This document shows, piece after piece, positions 7,001 through 64,000 of a DNA stretch of 64,000 nucleotides. The translations under genes were made by a program, and so were the position numbers. Location: the IMG/VR virus record IMGVR_UViG_3300010403_000705, positions 186,001 to 250,000 of that record. One strand, 5' to 3'. How positions within the stretch are numbered: position 1 is the stretch's first letter; each line of letters starts with the position of its first letter. Under the pieces are notes generated by a model. The model saw only the letters and a program-made list of their open reading frames with translations. It ran no database searches and was not told where the DNA came from.

Positions 7001-8126
7001 TGTAAAATTATCCAATTCTGCTAGTACTATTTTAAGTGTTAAGTTAAAAAGCGGAGATTCGCGTATAGATTATTTTGCAGGTGGAAGAATAGAGATTGAT
7101 ACTCAAAATGCCATATCAGAAGAAGGTATTAGTTTAACTAATAACTCTATAATTGTTTCAAAACCAGCCTTGCAAATAATTAGTGTAAAAATAATTGGCG
7201 ATCTAACTAATACGGATTATTTTACTAATGGTAGTATTAGTACTGATATGAAAACTATATATTTAGGTAAGTTATTACCAGCAAATAACTTACCTTTATC
7301 TATTGTATATCAAACAACAGAAAATAATAACCGTACTATTAACACTCAAATCATAAGATTAAATAAAAAATTACCTTATCAAAAATCACATGTACTAGTA
7401 AATTATATACCTAAAGGTATGCAAGGAGACCGTATAGCTATTTTTAAAGATGAAGTCGGACATATAAATTTTGCTCTTACTGCATCTCATAAAGATTATA
7501 TTATAAGAGCACCGATATTTTGGTCCAAAAACACTTGGCATAGAATTAAAGCTAGTTATAAAGTTAATAGTAAAAATAATACTGATGAAATGAGACTATT
7601 TTTAGATGGTTATCAGTATAATAATATTTTAGTTGGCAGTAATATTATTTTTGGTAATTTACCTATCATTGTAGGTGAAGTTACGCTAGGTGATGGTTAT
7701 GGATCTTTGGGAAATGTCAGATTTAAAGATTCCATTAATGAGTTATTTATAGGAACACAATATAATAAAGAGTTTCCTATCTTTGCTTTACTAGATAATT
7801 TAAGAATTAGTAGTAATGCTAGACCTATTTATGCGCCTTATGGCGAACCAATTGACGTTAATTATACTTCTAATCTAGATATGGTGTTTCCAGTAACAGA
7901 AGATTTATTTACAACTTATCTCTTAAATTCCGATATTATTTCTGTTATAAATGATGATTTTGCTGTATTAAAAAATAGAGAAACAGGTCTATTCGATTTT
8001 TCTGTTAATATAATTGATTCTTTGGGTATAGTTAGTAATAGTATAAAGTCTAGAGAGGCTTTAGAAAAATTGATAAAAGTTCTCAAACCTGCTAACTCTA
8101 GGGTATTTATACAGTATATTAAATGA
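1008..8126 (+). CDS. Baseplate/tail megaprotein (2372 aa): wedge-like segment, two interrupted LamG-like domains, internal ~60-aa repeats
   Basis: RERYRDALTAALTSFIQGPTLSAIK resembles baseplate wedge/tail-I proteins. LamG-like motifs GTFETWINP / HHMATSW / EMHLFIDG / GIMDQVKIYS occur, then again as GTIEFWMNP / WHRIKASY / EMRLFLDG / LLDNLRIS. Confidence 0.6.
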   Translation: MQNLRIINVQVNNSSNIDVIFTDNLTSNLTTSNVVIITDTPDVPSSEVLEIKVIGNTLSIICQPLTPLAAYFVKFESTTLHPFISLNGEAKISEDGVSNKYLILGPLAPDNAVKNYFLSYFKDNVYDINDDNALVTKYINSLSIALSRALYDIGQLKNENYLSFTVTDEQKTRGEGPFDRLNEEGAYDIIRVGRNVSTANAKMIFSIDNFPTFPITLQQQSNIEYLKTNSIDEAGYFNINNLILNLNTSPITKIKSIIFTLTTNNPIYVYDIEKLGYQIRNSRYDQEFAFDYILLNDNQVKISDKILEDANFSLNNIFNIEVNYESKDLGRIIEDNSLTITTVKTSIREVLPPIINIFNLKHAPIVDVNGNTNQLNGIIFTDPNTTTGSKHPAFITELPFRLNGLPFSPGQYSIDYSTGTVYVYGADLSNDGTGPFPPLATYNYLLVYKQEQDYIFDSDLSDLVALPHGNLISSQGNISFNYEEVLIPGTDYIAGLHREALAERINNNLVAANTIKTLHSPITNVFRIYNETSGEIYTLDRWNNNKIYFRYNNPPAVKQITNERVTFNSVINELLFINTYFVNSNNINIIKILLKNNSIISSTEDSLATSFNSSLRFANTNIFLNEKWFDRQSEETFNTNRLFNIGEYMVDYINGIIYCAVTDPQNFNIGTASYKNKAITTLFPHLISVEDIYYQTDILGKRNKKFSYLSFGDKTIVPDILDFADELSLNNNAVSIYQVNNNTVGVFVDNVVFVPGVTNQIKFVRGIFEYNDLLYNTHPLNFANFSLSDGFDIHISPISGQVFENVQFDGMNYYVLINQNITYLSSSITYTFNITRLSDSITLWDTAGIIIPGNPTKLILSGIGSPIEGDLVSINFSFNINNLSRVVVDYNKGEYYIDYTYIADEIIISYEYGDNVIDFRQNKNLPANTSYYVTYKAGALRDALLRNFGTLVDIPELSNFDIDFDRERYRDALTAALTSFIQGPTLSAIKNIGKTISHITPEVIESVFQNWSLGNTLLSQEQIKTTGNFQLLPAKFDNGVLINSPDQIIKFPINSNVRFEEGTFETWINPLWNGLDNDATLVFNILQDGYVIDPSKVFIGIAEYHPIINNGIFSISKLTNVSGIPNKNKDGIFIYYDQDISGNFQRWYVEIIDGYVAADSSNYKIKITSTGGFYDTKSLNTPKPSNLNIFTGTSSINLSINGTAPIDEGITFVSDVDHYILDTGQEKNKNRLSIYKDISGYLNFRVYDNNRVPYTLSADISGWKAGDLHHMATSWKLNTINNRDEMHLFIDGFEVPNIIKYGQKLKPYLHEKFRTVDPEEIIGLVDRDILSSTDLQTTTGSVAVTSSINFSTYNIFVGDTIHIDEIGFANPGYTILSINGQNLILSAPMPQTLSNGRFSINRTQFTVISNIDVSPNISVSTIHALISGTDINALAGSNLVTSSSINFSTLNVQPGYTIRIDNLLLRTVYTILQVIGNSLIIDDTLPVNITNTDFKIYSHVENEIPGIRALYPAYHISKDTNFNNVLTISDKAVAGDLILIRTLGLNHRKIKKEYYVWSDNTENILMTNLPAPISLDEVRITKIILPKTSIDLTNSTLLGGILTSNNLVTAQPSSLQGGRSLSITLSGTNVDFSTPVQVLINGISETGLTNETIIFNEYGTLDFINLYSLVNYINIIVKPININRAAAVVTVKEKYSITHPESDGYYPIVRVSYPIAYGYTLYQSGVNTVTDDNNLFSNLDINNYLLITTPENVVGFYKIIGVSSDRKTLLVDASLGPFTNGTYQILNVSTYRSGLQNGFFTFENSVLFGQPYFLNKGFYEFEYFTYTKIKLDPMNTKVFLGTDFQGTHQLYGIMDQVKIYSTMLTDTRTGENIPNNQRSITKDFNSLKSLKKDNNTLMLIDFNKFPFINSADFYTSLGSIKKHFNSSVVVNENFENSLVLLDDPIILSNDGILDARKEGTIEFWMNPLFDTYNDPNKRFYFDAFGAIEEEAISTDNVSVKLSNSASTILSVKLKSGDSRIDYFAGGRIEIDTQNAISEEGISLTNNSIIVSKPALQIISVKIIGDLTNTDYFTNGSISTDMKTIYLGKLLPANNLPLSIVYQTTENNNRTINTQIIRLNKKLPYQKSHVLVNYIPKGMQGDRIAIFKDEVGHINFALTASHKDYIIRAPIFWSKNTWHRIKASYKVNSKNNTDEMRLFLDGYQYNNILVGSNIIFGNLPIIVGEVTLGDGYGSLGNVRFKDSINELFIGTQYNKEFPIFALLDNLRISSNARPIYAPYGEPIDVNYTSNLDMVFPVTEDLFTTYLLNSDIISVINDDFAVLKNRETGLFDFSVNIIDSLGIVSNSIKSREALEKLIKVLKPANSRVFIQYIK

Positions 8127-14773: not shown

Positions 14774-15640
14774 ATTCCTGAAGGTGTCGAGGTGCGCATT
14801 AGCGCAGAATTAATTAAGCCATTGGTTATTAATAAAATAGTTGATAAAATTTATGTGGGTAATAACAGTAGATATGTTAATAACCCACCAGAAGGATATA
14901 ACGAATTTAATAAATGTATTAAAAAAATAGAAGATATTGGAAGCACAAAAAGTCATGTGAAAATTTCAGATATAAAAACAAAGGGAAAATTTACATATTG
15001 GACTTTTAATAATAATTGGTATATGTTCTCTACATTTGGAATGACAGGGCAATGGTCACCTAATGAGGGAAAGCATGTTTGTTTTTGTTTTAGATTATAT
15101 GATGAGAAGAATGATATATTTAATTATATATATTTCAATGATCCTAGACATTTTGGAACTATCAGATTTGTGTATTCTGATAAAGAATTAAAAAATAAAC
15201 TTAATGAACTAGGTTGGGATCCGCTTAGTAGTTCTGGATTGAATGATGCTTGGTTAAATTGGATTCATAGCGAATTAATGAAATTAAATAAACCTATTGG
15301 ACAAGCTCTTTTAGACCAAACTATTTTTGCAGGAGTAGGAAACTATATAAGAGCAGAAGCTTTATATCTTGCTAAACTATCTCCCTGGAGAATTTCTAAT
15401 ACCTTATCTAAAAATGAAATAAAACACTTATCACAAGCCATCATAGATGTAATGCAAGAATCTTATAAACATCAAGGAGCTACCTTATTAACATATAAAG
15501 ATTCGTATGGTAATGAAGGAAAGTATTCCTCTTGTTTTAAAGTTTATGGTAGGCATACTGATACATTAGGTAATACAATAAAAACAGAATTGACTCCTGA
15601 AGGAAGAACTATTCATTGGTGCCCTAATATTCAAAAATAA
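14774..15640 (+). CDS. mutM: Fpg/Nei-family DNA glycosylase, proposed ATT start
   Basis: PEGVEVR N-terminal motif, TKGKFTYW, FGMTGQW, FNDPRHFG, H2TH motif LLDQTIFAGVGNYIRAEALY, GRTIHWCPNIQ. AAGGA at 14761-14765 lies 8 nt before ATT-CCT-GAA. Confidence 0.85.
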   Translation: MPEGVEVRISAELIKPLVINKIVDKIYVGNNSRYVNNPPEGYNEFNKCIKKIEDIGSTKSHVKISDIKTKGKFTYWTFNNNWYMFSTFGMTGQWSPNEGKHVCFCFRLYDEKNDIFNYIYFNDPRHFGTIRFVYSDKELKNKLNELGWDPLSSSGLNDAWLNWIHSELMKLNKPIGQALLDQTIFAGVGNYIRAEALYLAKLSPWRISNTLSKNEIKHLSQAIIDVMQESYKHQGATLLTYKDSYGNEGKYSSCFKVYGRHTDTLGNTIKTELTPEGRTIHWCPNIQK

Positions 15641-18351: not shown

Positions 18352-19752
18352 ATGCCAGTAATACATTCAATACAACACGATAAACCAGAGGAAGTGATTG
18401 ACGATATGAGTGACAATAAAGATAAATTAATTAATGAAACAAATAATGAAGAATTGAATAAAAAAGAACAAGAAAAATTAGCAGCTCTAAAAGCAAAAAA
18501 TCAAGCAAAACAACAAGAAAATCAAACAAAACAGGAGAGTAAATTGGCATCCAAAATTGTTGCAAAAAAAGAGAGAAGTCTGTCACTAGGCGTTTTAGGA
18601 TCTGGGCAGGCAGGATCTAGAATTGCTGAGGCATTTTATAAACTTGGTTACGACACTATAGTAGTTAATACAGCAATGCAAGATTTAAAATTTATTGATA
18701 TTCCAGATTCTAATAAATTGTTACTTGAATACGGTTTGGGAGGCGCAGCTAAAGAAATTGAAATTGGTAGATCTGCCGCTGAAGCTCATCGTGGAGAAGT
18801 TTTGCAATTAGTTAATGATAAATTATCTAATTCTCAAGTCAATGTATTATGTTTAAGTTTAGGTGGTGGATCCGGAGCAGGATCCTGTGAAACTTTAGTA
18901 GATCTTTTATCAGAACTAGGTAAACCTTTAATAGTAATTACAGTATTACCAATGGATACTGAAGATGCACAAACTAAAAGTAATGCACTAGAAACTTTAT
19001 CTAAATTAGCTAGGTTAACTCAAAATAAAAAAGTTAACAATTTGATTGTCGTAGATAATGCAAAAATTGAAGCCATATATCATCATATTAATCAAGTAGA
19101 TTTTTATAACGTAGCCAACAAGGCTATTGTAGATCCAATTGATGTTTTTAATACATTATCTTCTATGCCTTCCTCTACTAAAGCATTAGATCCTATGGAG
19201 TGGTCTAAATTATTTATAGATGGTGAGGGTCTTAGTGTATATGGAGAATTTTCAGTCGATAATTATCAAGAAGACACTGCTATAGCAGAAGCAGTTATTA
19301 ACAATCTTGCCGGAAATCTGTTAGCAGAAGGTTTTGATCTAAAACAATCAAAATATGTAGGTTTTATTATCGCCGCAAATAAAGAAGTTTGGTCCAAAAT
19401 TCCAGCTTCTAGTGTTAATTATGCTAGTAGTATGATTAATGATTTATGTGGAAATCCAAAAGGCGTGTTTAAGGGTATGTATATCATAGATTCTCCGGAA
19501 AATAATGTGAAAGTATTTTCGATGTTTTCTGGTCTAGGTTTGCCTACGGTAAGAGTTGAACAGCTAAAAGCTGAAACTAAAGAATTGCAGAGTAAGGTAA
19601 AGAATAAGGATGAATCAAGAAACTTAACCTTACAATTAGACACTGGAACAAATGAAACGGTATCAGCCGCTCAAAAAATTAAAGAAAAGATCGCTCAAAA
19701 ATCTTCGGCTTTTGGCAAATTAATGGGCGGGGTTGTAGATAGGAGAAAATAA
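18352..19752 (+). CDS. Tubulin/FtsZ-family GTPase (PhuZ/TubZ-like)
   Basis: GVLGSGQAGSRIA, VVNTAMQDL, GLGGAAK, signature LGGGSGAG, IVVDN, DPMEW; charged N-terminal extension. True start may be 18406. Confidence 0.85.
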   Translation: MPVIHSIQHDKPEEVIDDMSDNKDKLINETNNEELNKKEQEKLAALKAKNQAKQQENQTKQESKLASKIVAKKERSLSLGVLGSGQAGSRIAEAFYKLGYDTIVVNTAMQDLKFIDIPDSNKLLLEYGLGGAAKEIEIGRSAAEAHRGEVLQLVNDKLSNSQVNVLCLSLGGGSGAGSCETLVDLLSELGKPLIVITVLPMDTEDAQTKSNALETLSKLARLTQNKKVNNLIVVDNAKIEAIYHHINQVDFYNVANKAIVDPIDVFNTLSSMPSSTKALDPMEWSKLFIDGEGLSVYGEFSVDNYQEDTAIAEAVINNLAGNLLAEGFDLKQSKYVGFIIAANKEVWSKIPASSVNYASSMINDLCGNPKGVFKGMYIIDSPENNVKVFSMFSGLGLPTVRVEQLKAETKELQSKVKNKDESRNLTLQLDTGTNETVSAAQKIKEKIAQKSSAFGKLMGGVVDRRK

Positions 19753-36141: not shown

Positions 36142-36689
36142 AGATTTATTTTATTGGGTCACATTCAACAGGAAAAACTACATGTGCAAGATACGTTTCT
36201 GAGACGTATAAAATACCTATGATTACTGAAGTGGCACGCATGATTTTATCAGAAAAAGAATTACATTTAGATTCTTTGCGTACTAATTTGGATATAGTAG
36301 ATGACTATCAATCAAAAATATTTAATAGACAGATTGAACAAGAAAGTAAATATAATAGTTTTGTATCTGATAGAAGTTTTGATTGTCTGGCTTATGCTGC
36401 GCAGCATGCTAGAATTTTGCCATCTCTCTTAAAATCAGCTGAGTTAAAAAATTATATAGATAATTTAAAATCATATGACTCTTTCATTTTTTTTATTAGA
36501 CCATCGAAGGCAACTTTAAAAGATGATGGCATAAGAGAGAATTTAACCTGGGAGGGTATAATTTCTATAGATGCTCAAGTTAAATTCTTATGTGAAATGT
36601 TTGAATTAAGATATTTTCAAATTAACACTGATAATATGCAAGAAAGAGTTAAATTAGTAAATTCAGTATTATCACTATATAGAATATAA
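36138..36689 (+). CDS. P-loop NTPase (AAA_28/NadR-like, possible nucleotide kinase)
   Basis: IYFIGSHSTGKTT, ITEVAR, FVSDRSFDCLAY. Confidence 0.75.
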   Translation: MKIYFIGSHSTGKTTCARYVSETYKIPMITEVARMILSEKELHLDSLRTNLDIVDDYQSKIFNRQIEQESKYNSFVSDRSFDCLAYAAQHARILPSLLKSAELKNYIDNLKSYDSFIFFIRPSKATLKDDGIRENLTWEGIISIDAQVKFLCEMFELRYFQINTDNMQERVKLVNSVLSLYRI

Positions 36690-57714: not shown

Positions 57715-58800
57715 ATGCAAACAATAAATCAACTATTAGAATCTTGTAAAAATAAATTGGTATTTCTGCAAAATATGATACCTATCACGCAAAATCAAAA
57801 TAGGTTAAAAGAAATAGATGATTTGGTAAGTAATAGTAATATCTGGGCTTCTCCTAAAGAAGCCGCTTCTCTAATGAAAGAACGTCAAAAAGTTTCTGAC
57901 ATATTAAAGAAATTGTCTTCTTATCAAGATCAGATTAATTTTTACATAGAGTGTCAACAGTATATGCCAGAAGAATTAATAAAAATTTCTTCACAGGTAG
58001 AAGATTTGCATAAAGATATTTCTTTGTTTGAATTTAAACAGATGATGAATGATCCTATAGATGATAGTCCAGCTATTCTTACTATTAATGCTGGTGCTGG
58101 CGGATTAGAAGCTGCCAATTGGACCAGTATGTTATTGCGTATGTATTCTAGATATGCAGATTCAAATAAGTTTAAACTAGAAATGCTAGATATGAAACCC
58201 TCAGAAGAACATGCAAGTATTTGTACTGACTGTGTTTCTATAAGAGTGGAAGGTCCGTACGCATATGGATTTTTAAAAGGTGAGGCGGGAGTTCATAGAT
58301 TAATAAGAAATTCTCCGTTCAATTCAGGAGATGCTAGGCATACTTCTTTTGCTGCCGTGGCTGTTTTACCAGATATTGAAGACAAATTATCAATTGATAT
58401 TCAAATAAATGAGAAAGATATAGAAATTACTACTATGCGCGCCTCTGGTGCAGGTGGACAAAATGTTAATAAAGTAGAAAGTGCTGTTAGATTAAAACAC
58501 ATTCCAACAGGAATTGTAATTAATTCTCGTTCTGAAAGAGATCAGCATACCAATAGAAAAATAGCTATGAAGATTCTGAAAGCAAAACTTTATGAAATAG
58601 AAATGCAAAAACAGAATAAAGAGAAAGAAAAATATTTCTCCAGCATGCAAGATAATTCTTTTGGTCATCAAATAAGGTCTTATATTTTATTTCCAACTCA
58701 GATGGTCAAAGATCATCGAACAAATTTTGAAGTAAGAGATGCGGAAAAAGTCTTAGATGGAGATATTGAAGAATTCATTATGGCTTATTTACATTCTTAA
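57715..58800 (+). CDS. prfB: Peptide chain release factor 2, no programmed frameshift
   Basis: [14 protein letters not shown] (SPF), [17 protein letters not shown] (GGQ), QIRSY. Confidence 0.93.
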
Positions 58801-60131: not shown

Positions 60132-60455
60132 ATGAAAGAGTTTTCCTATTGCCCAATTTGTGCGAATAAATTAAAAAGCCGACTGTTTAAGGATAACATT
60201 AAACTTCTTTCTTGCCAGGAAGGAGTGGCACATTACATTTCTTTTAAATTGCAAGACCAACAAATGTCAAACATGACATTATACTTAGATAATTATTCGT
60301 ACTTGGAAATGGATTTTTTAAAACAAATATCTACCTATTACTATGATCCTTTAAATGGGATGGCTAAGCTGGTGATTCCTAAAATTATAGAACCGGATTT
60401 TCCGCAACTCAAAAATTTAAAAGAAAAACTATTAAAGTATGTGTTGTTTACATAA
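60132..60455 (+). CDS. Zinc-ribbon array member 7 (CPIC...C...AH; ends KLLKYVLFT)
   Basis: Same layout as neighbours. Confidence 0.78.
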   Translation: MKEFSYCPICANKLKSRLFKDNIKLLSCQEGVAHYISFKLQDQQMSNMTLYLDNYSYLEMDFLKQISTYYYDPLNGMAKLVIPKIIEPDFPQLKNLKEKLLKYVLFT

Positions 60456-60497
60456 TCTTTTGGTAATTTACCAGTCTCTTGCATCTGTTGTTTTTAT

Positions 60498-60860
60498 ATG
60501 AAATGTGTGTTTTGTGATAATGATTGTGTCATACAAGCCAGAAGTAATTCCGCTTGTGAAAAGTATATGAAATTTGCGATGTTTTATCCTATTTGTAAAA
60601 TATGTCAAATATCCTATAAAGTCAACTGGTCAAAAAGAGAATATATATCTGCGATTGTTTTTATGATCAAAGATCAAGAAACTTGTCCAACTATTGTTAC
60701 TAATCATCTGATTATAGACGTACAAGAAAATTCTACCAAACTATTCGGTCGTGCCAATTTTGATAAACCTATTATTGATCTTTCTTATGCGATGGACATT
60801 CATCCAAATAATTTGTATGAACGTTTAACAAAATTAAAGAAATTAATTTTATTCTCATAA
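60498..60860 (+). CDS. Zinc-ribbon array member 8 (CVFC...CKIC; ends KLKKLILFS)
   Basis: Same layout as neighbours. Confidence 0.78.
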   Translation: MKCVFCDNDCVIQARSNSACEKYMKFAMFYPICKICQISYKVNWSKREYISAIVFMIKDQETCPTIVTNHLIIDVQENSTKLFGRANFDKPIIDLSYAMDIHPNNLYERLTKLKKLILFS

Positions 60861-60861
60861 T

Positions 60862-61194
60862 ATGAATTGTTATTACTGTAAACAAAATATTGATGTTATG
60901 TCATTGTGGTCTTATAGTAAAAATACTGTATTTTGTGAAAAATGTAAAGCTTATCAGAGTTATCACCAAGGATATTTATATAATATTTGTTTTATGTTCG
61001 ATGAAAATAAATCAGTCTCTGATCAGTCTACGAAAAAAGGTTACTGGATCGTAATCAATGTTGTGAGAAATCAATTCTCATTAGAGTTAAATAACTCAAT
61101 AATTATTAAGGATCTGCCCGAAGCTGATAAAATCACTCCTGCTAATGTACAAGAAACACTGTATAGACTATTGAGGTTAAAAGCGTATCTTTAA
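60862..61194 (+). CDS. Zinc-ribbon array member 9 (CYYC...CEKC; ends RLLRLKAYL)
   Basis: Zinc-ribbon body carrying the KAF-type tag variant. Confidence 0.78.
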   Translation: MNCYYCKQNIDVMSLWSYSKNTVFCEKCKAYQSYHQGYLYNICFMFDENKSVSDQSTKKGYWIVINVVRNQFSLELNNSIIIKDLPEADKITPANVQETLYRLLRLKAYL

Positions 61195-61199
61195 GTTAG

Positions 61200-61480
61200 A
61201 GAGTGTGAGGTGTGTTATTAAAAGATAATGCTATAAGATGCTTAAATAAAGATTAAGAGATAAAAATCGATTATTGGAGATATGGTTGGTAATTTGAGAA
61301 GGTTTGAGGGTGAGTAGAAGCTGAGATATGATAATACTGAGAGTAAAATGCAGTTAAATTATTACTTAACCCTCATTTGGGGGGCAAGGATCGTGCCCGC
61401 TCGACCCATCGCCAACCTTTCCATCGCTCACTGTATTGCCCTGTGGCGCGTTCTGTCTCTAAGACCTTACCCATCCTTTA
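61200..61480. other. Non-coding junction with GC-skew inversion and GC-content step
   Basis: Hand count: about 42 G vs 5 C in 61201-61350, about 15 G vs 35 C in 61391-61480; GGGGGG at 61379-61384. Confidence 0.65.
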
Positions 61481-61565
61481 TATGATGTATAATAATAAAT
61501 TTATCTTGTAGATAATGATCTTATTATTAATCATCTCCCATCATTGATCATATTAATAATTAATT

Positions 61566-61757
61566 ATGCAAACCAGACCCGTTATCGTGGTTTCCATTCA
61601 AACTAGCCTCAGATCATTCGAGATTCGGGCTTATCATGGGTCACCCATCGGCAAAAAGCGTTCGGCAGTCGATGCTATGCAAGCCGCACAACGTGGTAAG
61701 ACCGTGGTGTGGAGCAATGACGGGCGGGAACCCATCACCTTCAATGCCAGAGGCTAG
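61566..61757 (+). CDS. Small hypothetical protein
   Basis: 63 aa, first ORF after an AT-rich spacer. Confidence 0.55.
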   Translation: MQTRPVIVVSIQTSLRSFEIRAYHGSPIGKKRSAVDAMQAAQRGKTVVWSNDGREPITFNARG

Positions 61758-61761
61758 GGAT

Positions 61762-61902
61762 ATGGATCCTGTCATCATGATTCTGGTTTGGATCGGCGGG
61801 GCTTTCGGCTTTCAAGAGCGTTGGCACTGGAAGGGAACCGTAGGGTATCTGATTACTACGATGGTCTTGCAGTTCATCATCAGTTACTCACCCATCATCT
61901 AA
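61762..61902 (+). CDS. Small membrane protein (46 aa)
   Basis: MDPVIMILVWIGGAFG...KGTVGYLITTMVLQFII; GAGG/GGGA upstream. Confidence 0.55.
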   Translation: MDPVIMILVWIGGAFGFQERWHWKGTVGYLITTMVLQFIISYSPII

Positions 61903-61920
61903 TGGTCTCTGAGAGATATC

Positions 61921-62202
61921 ATGGAACTCCTTCTCACCAGCGTCCTGTTCATTGTCTGCTGTTTCATTGGCAAAGGCAAAGGAGTTGCAGCATACCTGAT
62001 TGGTACAGTGGCTATCATAGTGATGAGCAATCACCAAGCTGATATGTTGCAACTGTATAACAACCATCAGTTGCCGTTGCTTATCGGGGCTTCCATCATT
62101 CCCATCATCTCTATTATGATTAGCCGGTGGTGGGGACTATTCTTCTATCTGTTCGCTTCTATAGCAGTCACGGCTCTTGTCATAGCTACTGTCGTGGTCT
62201 AA
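61921..62202 (+). CDS. Multi-pass membrane protein (family A)
   Basis: GKGVAAYLIGT...YNNHQ...ISRWWGLFFY; GAGAG upstream. Confidence 0.75.
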   Translation: MELLLTSVLFIVCCFIGKGKGVAAYLIGTVAIIVMSNHQADMLQLYNNHQLPLLIGASIIPIISIMISRWWGLFFYLFASIAVTALVIATVVV

Positions 62203-62205
62203 TGA

Positions 62206-62234
62206 AGAGGGGGACTAGCGCCCCCTCTGTTGTT
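62206..62234 (+). terminator. Hairpin terminator-like
   Basis: AGAGGGGG-7 nt-CCCCCTCT, then GTTGTT, just after the stop. Confidence 0.65.
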
Positions 62235-62246
62235 AGAGTTGTGACT

Positions 62247-62281
62247 TGGTACATCACTTGCAGATTGCATATTCAATGCCA
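62247..62281. promoter_or_regulatory. 35-bp dyad of sigma54-like arms (copy 1)
   Basis: TGGTACATCACTTGCA-gat-TGCATATTCAATGCCA. Confidence 0.7.
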
Positions 62282-62334
62282 AGTGATGTAGATGATTGTT
62301 AGAGACCCATCAAGTAATCAATCTGAAATTAACT

Positions 62335-62637
62335 ATGCTCCTCATCTCGATCCTCTCCTTGGTTCTGTCAATCACCTCGATCTTCGTGGGTGGTGGCAAA
62401 GGAATTGCTATGTGGGTGATTGGCACGATTGCCTTAATCATCGCTGGCAACTTTCTGGGGAATGTGATTCAGATGTACAGCAATCATCAGGGACCCATCC
62501 TCCTGGCAACTGCGGGGATTCAGGTAGTGGCGATTCTCATCTCGCGGTGGTGGGGTTTGGTTTTTTACTTCGTTGCTTCGGTGGGTCTTACCCTGGTTCT
62601 TTTCCTCGGTGCCCTGGCTACCATGACGGTTGGTTGA
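62335..62637 (+). CDS. Multi-pass membrane protein (family A paralog)
   Basis: GKGIAMWVIGT...YSNHQ...ISRWWGLVFY. Confidence 0.75.
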   Translation: MLLISILSLVLSITSIFVGGGKGIAMWVIGTIALIIAGNFLGNVIQMYSNHQGPILLATAGIQVVAILISRWWGLVFYFVASVGLTLVLFLGALATMTVG

Positions 62638-62671
62638 TAGACCCATCTACTTGTTGCTCGGAGAGATAGCA

Positions 62672-62815
62672 ATGCTAACCATCTTTTGGCTGATTGGTCT
62701 GCTTTACTGTTGCATTAAGTCCGGTTCGGAAGGAGTAGCTTTTTACCTGCTGGCAACCTTCCTGTTTTTTCTTCTGTTAGGTCGTGTCAATTACAGCTTG
62801 CATAGTGGGTTCTAA
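62672..62815 (+). CDS. Small membrane protein (family A, short)
   Basis: CCIKSGSEGVAFYLLAT; GGAGA upstream. Confidence 0.6.
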   Translation: MLTIFWLIGLLYCCIKSGSEGVAFYLLATFLFFLLLGRVNYSLHSGF

Positions 62816-62835
62816 CCAATCTGTTGTATGCTGGT

Positions 62836-62870
62836 AGTCCTGGATCCTCCTAAAATAAGGATCCAGGACT
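62836..62870 (+). terminator. 13-bp stem hairpin
   Basis: AGTCCTGGATCCT-9 nt-AGGATCCAGGACT. Confidence 0.65.
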
Positions 62871-62890
62871 TACCTGTCATCTATTCTTGT

Positions 62891-62925
62891 TGGCATATCA
62901 ATTGCAATATACAGTATCTATACCA
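62891..62925. promoter_or_regulatory. 35-bp dyad of sigma54-like arms (copy 2)
   Basis: TGGCATATCAATTGCA-ata-TACAGTATCTATACCA. Confidence 0.7.
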
Positions 62926-62978
62926 AGGTGCAAAAAAGACTACTGCAAACCCATCCATTATTGATCTTGCTCTAAGTT

Positions 62979-63134
62979 ATGAAGAACCTCTTTTGGTACG
63001 GTGTGGTCTTCGTGGGCGGTTTGTTCGTTGGGACGCAGTACATCTCTCCCATCCTGCCGCAGTTGAATCATACTGTGACGGCGATTTCGGATGGCGCCAG
63101 TAGCGTCAAGTCGTCTCTTCCCAAGGTCAAGTAA
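62979..63134 (+). CDS. Small N-anchored membrane protein (family B, 51 aa, not in ORF track)
   Basis: MKNLFWYGVVFVGGLFVGTQYISPILPQLNHTVTAISDGASSVKSSLPKVK; paralog of 63170. Confidence 0.7.
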   Translation: MKNLFWYGVVFVGGLFVGTQYISPILPQLNHTVTAISDGASSVKSSLPKVK

Positions 63135-63169
63135 GTCCTGCGCCGACTCTTACATTACGATAAGCGACA

Positions 63170-63358
63170 ATGAAGACCATCTTTCTGACTTTGACTCTGG
63201 TTGTTGGTGGAATGTATGTGGGCGTCAAGTATGTGGCACCTATTGTGCCGCAAGCTCACATTCCGACGGCGGTAGAGTTCAAGGATGCTTTGCATAAGCT
63301 GCATCAGGAAGTCTCTTGTCCGGTCGGACCCAATCAGAGTAAGTGTCGCAAGATGTAA
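63170..63358 (+). CDS. Small N-anchored membrane protein (family B)
   Basis: MKTIFLTLTLVVGGMYVGVKYVAPIVPQ. Confidence 0.7.
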   Translation: MKTIFLTLTLVVGGMYVGVKYVAPIVPQAHIPTAVEFKDALHKLHQEVSCPVGPNQSKCRKM

Positions 63359-63388
63359 CCCATCACGATCGAAAGGATACTCAATATC

Positions 63389-63589
63389 ATGAATTATTCT
63401 CCGCAGAAGCGTGCTGCCCGTACTCGTGAGCTGAACCGGCTGATTGACGCGCAGCTCAAAGATGACGACGCTCGACCCGCCCGCGTCAAGCGTCTTCGGG
63501 CTCCCATCGACGACACCGATCTGCTGCCTGATCTCTACCGCTCTCCACGCGGTCGGCGTAAGCAGAAGCCGCACCATACCCACGACTGA
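63389..63589 (+). CDS. Small basic protein
   Basis: Arg-rich 66 aa, GAAAGGA upstream, GC-rich codons. Confidence 0.7.
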   Translation: MNYSPQKRAARTRELNRLIDAQLKDDDARPARVKRLRAPIDDTDLLPDLYRSPRGRRKQKPHHTHD

Positions 63590-63596
63590 ACCAACT

Positions 63597-63626
63597 ATGC
63601 CTGGCACCTTTTAGGTTGCCAGGCAT
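63597..63626 (+). terminator. Hairpin terminator-like
   Basis: ATGCCTGGCA-CC-TTTT-AGG-T-TGCCAGGCAT, then TATTATTT. Confidence 0.7.
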
Positions 63627-63646
63627 TATTATTTAAACTAGTTGTT

Positions 63647-63785
63647 TGGCATATGAGTTGCAATTAGCACAAGCTGTACCAAGGGCAAATTTAATAAGCC
63701 TGCACTTATGGCACGGAAGTTGTAATTAGCATAAGCTGTTCCAAGTCTTATGGCACGCTAGTTGCTAACTACAAGTCTTGTACCA
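63647..63785. promoter_or_regulatory. Three tandem 35-bp sigma54-like dyads (63647-63681, 63709-63743, 63751-63785)
   Basis: TGGCATATGAGTTGCA-att-AGCACAAGCTGTACCA; TGGCACGGAAGTTGTA-att-AGCATAAGCTGTTCCA; TGGCACGCTAGTTGCT-aac-TACAAGTCTTGTACCA. Confidence 0.75.
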
Positions 63786-63978
63786 AGCTCTGTGATGTCT
63801 TAGAAGACACCCATCAATTACTATGATGTTGCTTAGACACCGGTTGACGCTAAGCAAAGCGCGAAACCGAAGCGGTGGCGAATAGCTGCTGCGCCCCTTA
63901 CGGTGGTTTCTCTCTCCCATCCCGTAAAGGGGTGATCCAATAAGAGAGACAGATTCCAGCAACCAAAAGGAGCGCATC

Positions 63979-64000
63979 ATGAATTCTCGCACCGACCACA
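63979..64000 (+). CDS. Start of a CDS running off the window
   Basis: AAGGAG at 63967-63972, ATG at 63979 (MNSRTDH...). Confidence 0.55.

Follow-up and report, generated by a model that had tools for sequence, protein, structure and literature searches.

Putative mirror-paired sigma54-type promoters in a giant phage and in other uncultured phage contigs

Organization of the GC-rich end of the window

The window analysed here is a 64,000-nucleotide stretch (positions 186,001 to 250,000) of the IMG/VR virus record IMGVR_UViG_3300010403_000705, a phage contig of roughly 447 kb (447,633 bp). Most of the window is AT-rich, and its last part belongs to an 18.9-kb GC-rich stretch of the parent contig. 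At this end, short plus-strand gene cassettes are separated by terminator-like hairpins, each of which is followed by one or several 35-bp dyads made of two sigma54-type (-24/-12) arms on opposite strands. The arms were scored out of 12 against the consensus TGGCAYR-N4-TTGCW. The features are as follows.

61383-61398, minus strand: degenerate leftward half-site (10/12), exactly at the AT/GC junction
62207-62227, plus strand: terminator-like hairpin plus T-rich tail ending the 93-aa gene, 19 nt before dyad 1, also called on the minus strand
62247-62281, no strand assigned: dyad 1, forward arm 62247-62262 (TGGTAC-N5-TTGCA, 11/12) and reverse arm 62266-62281 (10/12)
62305-62311, plus strand: ACCCATC box, 24 nt after dyad 1, its CCCATC core starting 29 nt before the ATG at 62335
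62335-62815, plus strand: cassette after dyad 1, with a 100-aa membrane protein (62335-62637) and a 47-aa membrane protein (62672-62815)
62837-62869, plus strand: hairpin with a 12-bp stem after the 47-aa gene, 21 nt before dyad 2
62891-62925, no strand assigned: dyad 2, forward arm 12/12, reverse arm 9/12
62949-62955, plus strand: ACCCATC box, 24 nt after dyad 2, its CCCATC core starting 29 nt before the ATG at 62979
62979-63589, plus strand: cassette after dyad 2, with 51-aa and 62-aa paralogs and a basic 66-aa protein
63597-63626, plus strand: hairpin plus T-rich tail after the 66-aa gene, 20 nt before dyad 3
63647-63681, no strand assigned: dyad 3, first of a tandem trio, forward arm 12/12, reverse arm 10/12
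63709-63743, no strand assigned: dyad 4, 62 bp after dyad 3, forward arm 11/12, reverse arm 10/12
63751-63785, no strand assigned: dyad 5, 42 bp after dyad 4, forward arm 12/12, reverse arm 10/12
63809-63815, plus strand: ACCCATC box, 24 nt after dyad 5, at the start of the 194-nt leader of the 459-aa gene
63979-64000, plus strand: start of the 459-aa gene (60% GC), which is preceded by the dyad trio and runs off the window

The preliminary description of this region, made from the sequence alone, had reported five 35-bp dyads reading TGG-N10-G(C/T)W-N3-W(G/A)C-N10-CCA, each placed after a hairpin, and this observation was confirmed. The pattern matched at all five positions, and the left arm at 63751, described as a perfect consensus, indeed scored 12 of 12. 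A sixth match, at 36388 in the AT-rich part, had no sigma54-like arms and looks like a chance occurrence. Shuffles of the whole window gave no match. In the 18.9-kb GC-rich stretch of the parent contig, nine matches were found, against a mean of 0.017 in 300 dinucleotide shuffles. The claim that no dyad lies in the AT-rich part also held, since only two isolated 11/12 half-sites were found in 61 kb, about the number expected by chance. In contrast, the claim that the dyads are followed by AG held for these five dyads but not for the four beyond the window (CCAAT, CCAAC, CCATC and CCAAC), and across phages only the A is favored, at 52%. The distance of 54 nt separating the first two dyads from the ATGs at 62335 and 62979 was exact. 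However, this fixed distance comes from a second signal, the ACCCATC box, whose spacing of 24 nt is fixed in four of the nine dyads.

The standard genetic code covered 85% of the window, so that stop-codon recoding is not needed. An assembly chimera at the GC jump was rejected, because a separate Logan assembly of run SRR6185436, which may not be independent of the JGI sample, spans the junction and because three relatives share it. A search with Rfam found nothing at the dyads or in the leaders, and only a tRNA-Leu further on. The 459-aa protein is an orphan, apart from an ortholog of 475 aa (35% identical) in a relative, hereafter L336.

Occurrence in other viral contigs and in cellular genomes

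The element is not a local oddity. A scan of viral contigs returned at least 120 stretches, and at least 116 other viral contigs carry the dyad. These contigs range from 4 to 480 kb and from 31 to 62% GC. By comparison, a composition-matched, letter-permuted control pattern found a single stretch. The same consensus occurs in unrelated phage groups, with three terminase types and several jumbo contigs. The preliminary description had proposed that the sigma54 reading would fail if the GG and GC positions were no more conserved than the N positions across more copies. In 195 site sequences from other phages (both orientations being counted where both matched), GG/GC and the neighboring consensus positions were far more conserved than the N positions, and this test did not refute the reading. 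Moreover, the positions left free in the search pattern followed the sigma54 logo in mirror image, down to graded, weakly conserved positions (position 7 R 91%, 24 A 74%, 29 Y 89%, 30 R 91%, 31 T 92%, 32 G 87%). The free positions of the second arm thus reproduced C(-23), A(-22), Y(-21), R(-20), T(-14) and W(-11) of the sigma54 consensus (PMC12316311).

The paired form was at chance level in cellular genomes. Indeed, 54 of 152 viral sites matched on both strands, against 2 of 120 in cellular genomes, where the hits were ordinary single sites with chance-like second arms. Hence, the possibility of a host element copied into phages was rejected. In 1.1 Mb of the dyad-bearing loci, 773 half-sites of at least 11/12 were found against 32 expected, with up to about 25 in 13.5 kb, and the dominant arm offset was 19 bp. 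About 310 of these half-sites stand alone, so an arm is an autonomous unit. In the phage studied here, however, no arm occurs outside a dyad.

A DNA search with the GC-rich end and 21 kb of the AT-rich part against isolated phage genomes found nothing. The closest isolates by terminase, Caulobacter phage RW and MW202545, lack dyads in the parts examined (20000-62362 and 10000-57457, respectively), and further protein searches found no close isolate. Host inference from RF2 homologs returned only more huge-phage contigs.

Position of the dyads relative to genes

In small phages, dyads lie mostly between divergent gene blocks (39 cases, against 15-17 for each other class), often beside the terminase genes. 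In the megaphage clade to which this phage belongs, they follow terminators and precede same-strand cassettes, and in this window all flanking genes are on the plus strand. The terminator-then-dyad order is the rule in the clade, as illustrated by a mean folding energy of -15.3 for the 50 nt upstream of the dyads, -7.1 downstream and -10.0 in random windows. In the 13 dyads of this phage and L336, the forward, gene-facing arm was at least as good as the reverse arm in all cases, strictly better in 10 and equal in 3. The reverse arm nevertheless stays far above chance in this phage, although no leftward gene needs it.

An orthologous dyad trio lies upstream of the 475-aa gene in L336, where the N positions are fully turned over while the key positions are kept. 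The half-site at the AT/GC junction, degenerate here, is intact (TGGCACG-N4-TTGCC) in three relatives, L336, L340 and L009. In L336 and L340, a leftward protease gene lies about 300-370 nt further left, whereas no such gene follows here. In several loci, tandem single arms point at the adjacent genes. In another relative, L072, several strong single arms point antisense, just before terminators. Across all loci, single arms were only mildly sense-biased, although the ORF calls used for this count were crude. A simple sigma70 consensus scan placed nothing consistent at the dyads, and no plus-strand site at a dyad or in the gap between a dyad and its gene.

Search for sigma54, activators and linked regulators

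No GAFTGA-type activator and no RpoN-box protein was found in about 1.2 Mb around dyads, a sample which leaves out most of the 447-kb contig. Only four viral contigs had an rpoN-like gene, in a search that found only close relatives, and none of them carries a dyad. Among 242 viral loci encoding such activators, the 80 retained (669 kb, together with the four rpoN-like loci) hold no dyad. A search with E. coli RpoN returned only E. coli copies, and the alignment for a second degenerate scan for sigma54 gave the same peptide pattern as before. No protein family co-occurs with the dyads across the phage groups. An OmpR-type winged-helix-only gene lies just after dyad 9 (locus L002, 16453-16698), but it has no homolog in any other dyad locus.

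Interpretation

From these results, each dyad could be considered as a compact, mirror-symmetric pair of sigma54-type promoters marking the start of a transcription unit in the GC-rich compartment of the phage. We regard this reading as somewhat more likely than not. The analysis itself establishes that the two arms are TGGCAYR-N4-TTGCW on opposite strands, that their GC doublets flank a 5-bp A/T-rich center, that the element follows an intrinsic-terminator hairpin by 5-20 nt and precedes same-strand genes, and that the gene-facing arm is the better match. Binding, transcription and the identity of the reader are inferred from sequence alone. In this view, a sigma54-type RNA polymerase holoenzyme, most simply that of the host, would bind the forward arm, start about 12 nt past its GC, at dyad position about 27, and transcribe through ACCCATC into the cassette. 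The reverse arm would start at about position 9 and go left, driving the other block where the neighboring genes are divergent, as in many small phages. In this window the reverse arm would be a weaker twin, whose short leftward transcript would run straight into the adjacent hairpin. The two footprints overlap, so that only one orientation could be occupied at a time. Opening of the complex would need an activator, probably a phage factor or a host enhancer-binding protein acting from solution. Some observations do not fit easily with this reading, namely the lack of a recognizable activator around the dyads, the lack of dyads in the 669 kb of viral loci that do encode such activators, the obligatory dyad form and the retained reverse arm in this phage, the antisense single arms of L072 and the only mild sense bias of single arms across all loci. 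Besides, T at the fourth position (TGGTAY) is common in this clade, while it is expected to be uncommon in bacterial sigma54 promoters.

The interpretation given in the preliminary description, that the early/accessory region runs on host sigma54, is only partly supported. The arms are sigma54-type elements, they sit where operon promoters sit, between a terminator and the next genes, and they are confined to the GC-rich compartment of the window, but their reading by host sigma54 remains an inference. The face-to-face arms had been described as convergent, whereas the predicted starts lie past the center, about 17 bp apart, and point outwards. The dyad is thus geometrically a symmetric bidirectional promoter. 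The proposal that the second arm is a sigma54 decoy remains possible, and that of a mutual-exclusion switch is plausible on footprint geometry alone.

The main alternative, which we consider unlikely, is that the dyad is an operator for a phage-encoded multimeric DNA-binding protein and not a promoter. Each arm can be read as two direct TKGCA pentamers 11 bp apart, and the dyad as two such pairs in mirror image, a layout that would suit tandem winged-helix dimers or a tetramer. Such a protein would switch the ACCCATC-type signal 24 nt downstream on or off. This is in line with the obligatory dyad form and the reverse arm retained without a leftward gene in this phage, the tandem dyads at 42-43 bp (about four helical turns) in several phages, the arrays of 3-5 dyads, the fixed spacing to ACCCATC in four of nine dyads, the winged-helix gene near dyad 9 and the antisense single arms in L072. 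However, an operator sequence would be expected to differ between unrelated phages, whereas the consensus is the same in phages of 31-62% GC, which points to one conserved reader rather than co-evolving phage regulators. The lack of a co-occurring protein family across phage groups and of homologs of the winged-helix gene in other dyad loci, the match to graded positions of the sigma54 logo and the abundance of single arms, pointing in several loci at the adjacent genes, also argue against it.

Still less likely, the dyads may bind sigma54 holoenzyme without being used mainly to make RNA. Sigma54 holoenzyme forms stable, silent closed complexes, which next to each terminator would insulate cassettes from read-through, or the many copies on replicating phage DNA would titrate sigma54 away from host stress and defence regulons. 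The very high density of sites, the lack of an activator around the dyads, their position beside terminators and the arrays found in non-coding control regions are compatible with such sinks or roadblocks. Against this, the gene-facing arm is systematically the better one, single arms point at the adjacent genes in several loci, the junction arm decays where its target gene is missing, and the elements sit where the only plausible operon promoters must be, with no plus-strand sigma70 site placed there by the consensus scan. Finally, dyads acting as recombination sites that shuffle cassettes are very improbable: this phage does have, relative to L336, two extra mini-cassettes bounded by a terminator plus dyad and holding paralogous genes, but these are tandem paralogs, which fits ordinary duplication, no recombinase family is listed among the called genes of the 20-kb locus, the gene-content difference between the strain variants L002 and L003 is not bounded by dyads, and the arms carry a promoter consensus rather than a crossover core.

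Sigma54 promoters are the one bacterial promoter class that stays silent until an ATPase opens the complex, and phages are hardly known to use them. If the dyads are read by sigma54, a large set of uncultured phages, including a clade of roughly 450-kb phages, would time its genes with this tightly gated system, in a symmetric two-way form not described for sigma54 and with no recognizable activator, which raises the question of what opens the complex. A more speculative possibility, which we consider doubtful, is that many unrelated uncultured phages, from about 15-kb genomes to 450-kb megaphages, drive their genes from such promoters without any conventional enhancer-binding ATPase. Either an unknown phage factor would open the holoenzyme, or the shared A/T center between two opposed -12 elements would lower the barrier to opening. 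This would be a new route of sigma54 activation and a new form of host-polymerase takeover. The element is also a simple sequence marker, which could flag such phages and limit their possible hosts to bacteria that have rpoN, and as a short, tight, bidirectional promoter it may be useful as a genetic part.

Comparison with known systems

Literature searches found no description of paired sigma54 sites in phages. As in bacterial sigma54-dependent promoters, each arm has GG and GC doublets at the fixed spacing, shows the graded conservation of the logo and lies upstream of genes. Here, however, two putative promoters are interleaved in mirror image with a shared A/T center, no upstream activator sites or enhancer-binding protein gene were found, and the paired form is at chance level in cellular genomes. 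With palindromic phage operators of the lambda and P22 type, the dyads share their symmetry, their tandem copies and their position in control regions. They differ in that the site is 35 bp with four contact blocks, that the same sequence occurs in unrelated phages and that no linked regulator gene was found.

The one phage precedent found is Pseudomonas phage YuA (NC_010116; PMC10914365), a phage without its own RNA polymerase that is reported to use sigma54-type promoters in its structural region. Its record annotates three promoters with a -24/-12 consensus and measured activity. These sites are single and weak matches, and YuA has no dyad and no half-site of at least 11/12 in those regions. 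Lastly, symmetric bidirectional sigma70 promoters (bioRxiv 10.1101/2020.01.31.928960; PMC12825309) also have promoter elements coinciding on opposite strands, and are described as pseudo-symmetric promoters that drive divergent transcription, one polymerase binding event preventing the other. For the dyads, the divergent starts a short fixed distance apart are a geometric prediction, and the position between divergent genes is found in small phages but not in this window. Those promoters rest on the symmetry of the -10 hexamer, whereas here whole putative -24/-12 promoters cross each other, so that the -24 box of each lies in the other's predicted transcribed side.

Genomic setting of the GC-rich compartment

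The window corresponds to bases 186,003-250,002 of a 447,633-bp metagenomic phage contig (JGI Ga0134123_10000001, also IMGVR_UViG_3300010403_000705). Bases 1-61,380 of the window have about 29% GC and carry jumbo-phage genes, namely a TubZ-like tubulin, UvsW and DnaB helicases, ribonucleotide reductase, PhoH and a release factor 2 homolog. At about 61,380 the GC content jumps to 48-60% and stays there for at least 19 kb. This jump is not an assembly artefact, as it is spanned by a separate Logan assembly of sequencing run SRR6185436 (a run that may or may not be independent of the JGI sample) and as related phages show the same junction. One phage genome holds two compartments of very different composition, the difference being even steeper in the relative L336, where GC content rises from 27% to 60-70%. 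The boundary is sharp and conserved, and it starts with a small hairpin and a leftward sigma54-like half-site. By contrast, relatives of the P0137 lineage show no GC-rich part and no dyads within the 10 kb examined on either side of release factor 2. The features of the window and its relatives that bear on this setting are the following (L-numbers other than L002 designate loci of other phages).

Window 18352-19752: tubulin/FtsZ-family gene of the TubZ type, as in phages that position their DNA with a tubulin spindle.
Window 57715-58800: release factor 2 homolog.
Window 60133-61195: three tandem paralogous Cys-rich genes of about 107-120 aa, just before the junction.
Window about 61380, L336 about 6110, end of L340, and L009 about 200: AT/GC junction.
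Window 61921-63358: tandemly duplicated mini-cassettes of small membrane proteins.
Window about 63905-63935 and L336 about 7465-7495: hairpin in the long leader of the 459-aa gene.
L002 (locus of the same contig extending beyond the window) 14913-15000: tRNA-Leu(CAA), in the GC-rich compartment.
L002 16453-16698: 81-aa OmpR-type winged-helix-only protein, just after dyad 9.

Homologs of the release factor at 62-84% identity lie on contigs of up to 491 kb, about a dozen of them of 255-491 kb, which points to a clade of huge phages. TAG ends only 1 of 49 ORFs of at least 150 aa. At the position of the three Cys-rich genes, the relatives L333 (12239-18251) and L339 hold arrays of up to 15 genes which resemble them in size, the comparison resting on size alone.

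Verification and anatomy of the dyads

The pattern proposed in the preliminary description was found at all five of its positions, together with one unrelated, chance-like match, while shuffles of the window gave no match. The additional match, at 36388-36422, is the only one in the AT-rich part; it lies inside a short GC-rich palindrome (GCTGCGCAGC), has no sigma54-like arms and is probably due to chance. Beyond the window, the same contig has dyads at L002 7882, 8806, 9579 and 15981, and one more about 89 kb further on. This makes nine dyads in 18.9 kb, against 0.017 per dinucleotide shuffle of that GC-rich stretch. The observation was confirmed, including the three hairpins, the two exact 54-nt distances to the next ATG and the absence of dyads from the AT-rich part, although the claim that dyads are followed by AG holds only locally, within the window.

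Each dyad reads TGGYAY-N5-TTGCW, then 3 bp, then the mirror image, positions 16-20 between the two GC doublets being A/T-rich. The cassettes follow a regular order, in which a GC-rich hairpin with a T-run is followed after 5-20 nt by the dyad, then after 24 nt (in 4 of 9 dyads) by the motif ACCCATC, and finally by the ATG, about 29 nt after the start of the CCCATC core and without any obvious Shine-Dalgarno sequence. The distance of 54 nt noted initially results from this fixed arrangement. The two leaders share no other sequence. In seven loci of the megaphage clade, 38 dyads were found, for which the 50 nt upstream fold at a mean of -15.3 kcal/mol, against -7.1 downstream and -10.0 for random windows. 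Most of the exceptions are second or third members of tandem sets.

The related motif WCCCATC (window 61404-63815; L002 1470-20342) occurs 88 times on the plus strand and once on the minus strand in 18.9 kb. It lies 29-33 nt before 11 start codons that lack an obvious ribosome-binding site, but it is also common inside genes where, in several cases read by eye, it falls in frame as Pro-Ile codons. Relatives share this motif, whereas other jumbo contigs carry different one-strand motifs (CTCCCATTCAC, CACCTACAT). It could be a per-gene expression or processing signal. In the long leader of the 459-aa gene, CCCATC is followed by a CCCC-GTAA-GGGG hairpin that is conserved in L336 and has no match in Rfam.

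Distribution in viral and cellular genomes

A scan of the viral contig collection with a dyad pattern specifying 14 bases returned at least 120 stretches, on contigs ranging from 4 to 480 kb and from 31% to 62% GC, while a control pattern with the same letters permuted inside each block found a single stretch. Of 152 viral sites, 54 match on both strands, and the right-arm positions left free in the pattern follow the sigma54 logo in mirror image. The same scan of 596 Gb of bacterial and archaeal genomes also returned at least 120 stretches. However, only 2 of 120 sites were symmetric, the second arms looked like chance, and the taxa were scattered and included archaea. These cellular sites are best explained as ordinary single promoters plus a chance second half. 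The paired form is therefore a phage feature.

Nature of the arms and predicted geometry

The arm consensus T-TGGCAY-R-N4-TTGCW equals the published sigma54 promoter consensus (PMC12316311), including its weaker positions. In the 1.1 Mb of dyad-bearing loci there are 773 half-sites scoring at least 11 of 12, against 32 expected by chance, and about 310 of them stand alone. In several loci, runs of single arms point towards the adjacent genes. An arm is therefore an autonomous unit, and the dyad is its commonest paired arrangement, with an arm offset that is mostly 19 bp and sometimes 18-21.

Sigma54-dependent transcription usually starts about 12 nt past the GC doublet. On this basis, the forward arm is predicted to start at dyad position about 27, going right, and the reverse arm at about position 9, going left. 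The predicted transcripts therefore diverge and do not collide, contrary to the convergent second arm of the preliminary description. Each -24 box lies on the transcribed side of the other promoter, and the A/T centre is -11 to -7 for both. The footprints must overlap, so that the two orientations should exclude each other. While the sequence of the arms, their mirror arrangement and their position relative to hairpins and genes are directly established by the sequence analysis, the start points, the exclusion of one orientation by the other, the binding of a sigma54-type polymerase and promoter activity itself are inferred. The initial interpretation in terms of sigma54 is only partly supported.

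Genomic context

In small phages the dyad lies mostly between divergent gene blocks, with 39 cases against 15-17 for each other arrangement according to crude ORF calls. In 22 loci it lies within a few kb of the large-terminase gene, often at the head of that gene block. One group of small phages (L040 5380-6420; L069 3330-4300; L068 3300-4300) has a roughly 900-bp control region between divergent modules, which holds two or three tandem dyads (some with a 5-bp centre), one or more single arms, three iterons, a 25-30-nt poly-T run and CTGAACACC repeats, next to a terminase gene split by an endonuclease VII insert.

In the megaphage clade, instead, all neighbouring genes run the same way. The gene-facing arm is at least as good as the other in 13 of 13 dyads of this phage and L336, and strictly better in 10. 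L336, whose release factor 2 is 78% identical and whose 475-aa protein is 35% identical, keeps a dyad trio before the orthologous gene, in which the N positions are completely different and the key positions are kept. The duplicated mini-cassettes comprise 93-aa and 100-aa paralogs and 51-aa and 62-aa paralogs; the 100-aa and the 51/62-aa cassettes each follow their own terminator and dyad and are missing from L336. At the AT/GC junction, the relatives L336, L340 and L009 have an intact leftward single arm which, in L336 and L340, lies about 300-370 nt upstream of a leftward protease gene. In the present phage that gene is absent and the arm is degenerate. These patterns are what promoters would show.

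Search for sigma54 and activators

No rpoN-like gene and no GAFTGA-type activator was found in about 1.2 Mb around dyads, most of the 447-kb contig lying outside the sequence examined. Only four viral contigs were found to carry an rpoN-like gene, and none of them has a dyad. Another 242 viral loci encode enhancer-binding proteins; the 80 of them that were examined, many of which lie at contig ends, together with the four rpoN-like loci (669 kb in all), hold no dyad. Moreover, in the relative L072, strong single arms point antisense just before terminators. The reading of the dyads by sigma54 is therefore only inferred from sequence, and any way of opening the complex is hypothetical.

Alternative explanations

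The main alternative is that the dyad is an operator for a phage protein. This is favoured by the obligatory pairing in this phage, by the 42-43-bp spacing of tandem dyads and by the nearby OmpR-type winged-helix gene. It is weakened by the identical consensus in unrelated phages and by the lack of any co-occurring protein family. A sigma54 sink or roadblock is also possible, whereas a recombination site is unlikely.

Comparison with known systems

Literature searches revealed no description of paired sigma54 sites in phages, and phage YuA is the only reported phage found to have active -24/-12 promoters. YuA has no dyads. From their predicted geometry, the dyads are the sigma54 counterpart of the symmetric sigma70 bidirectional promoters described recently. 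The promoter type to which the arms are assigned is already known, and what is new is its symmetric, phage-specific arrangement.
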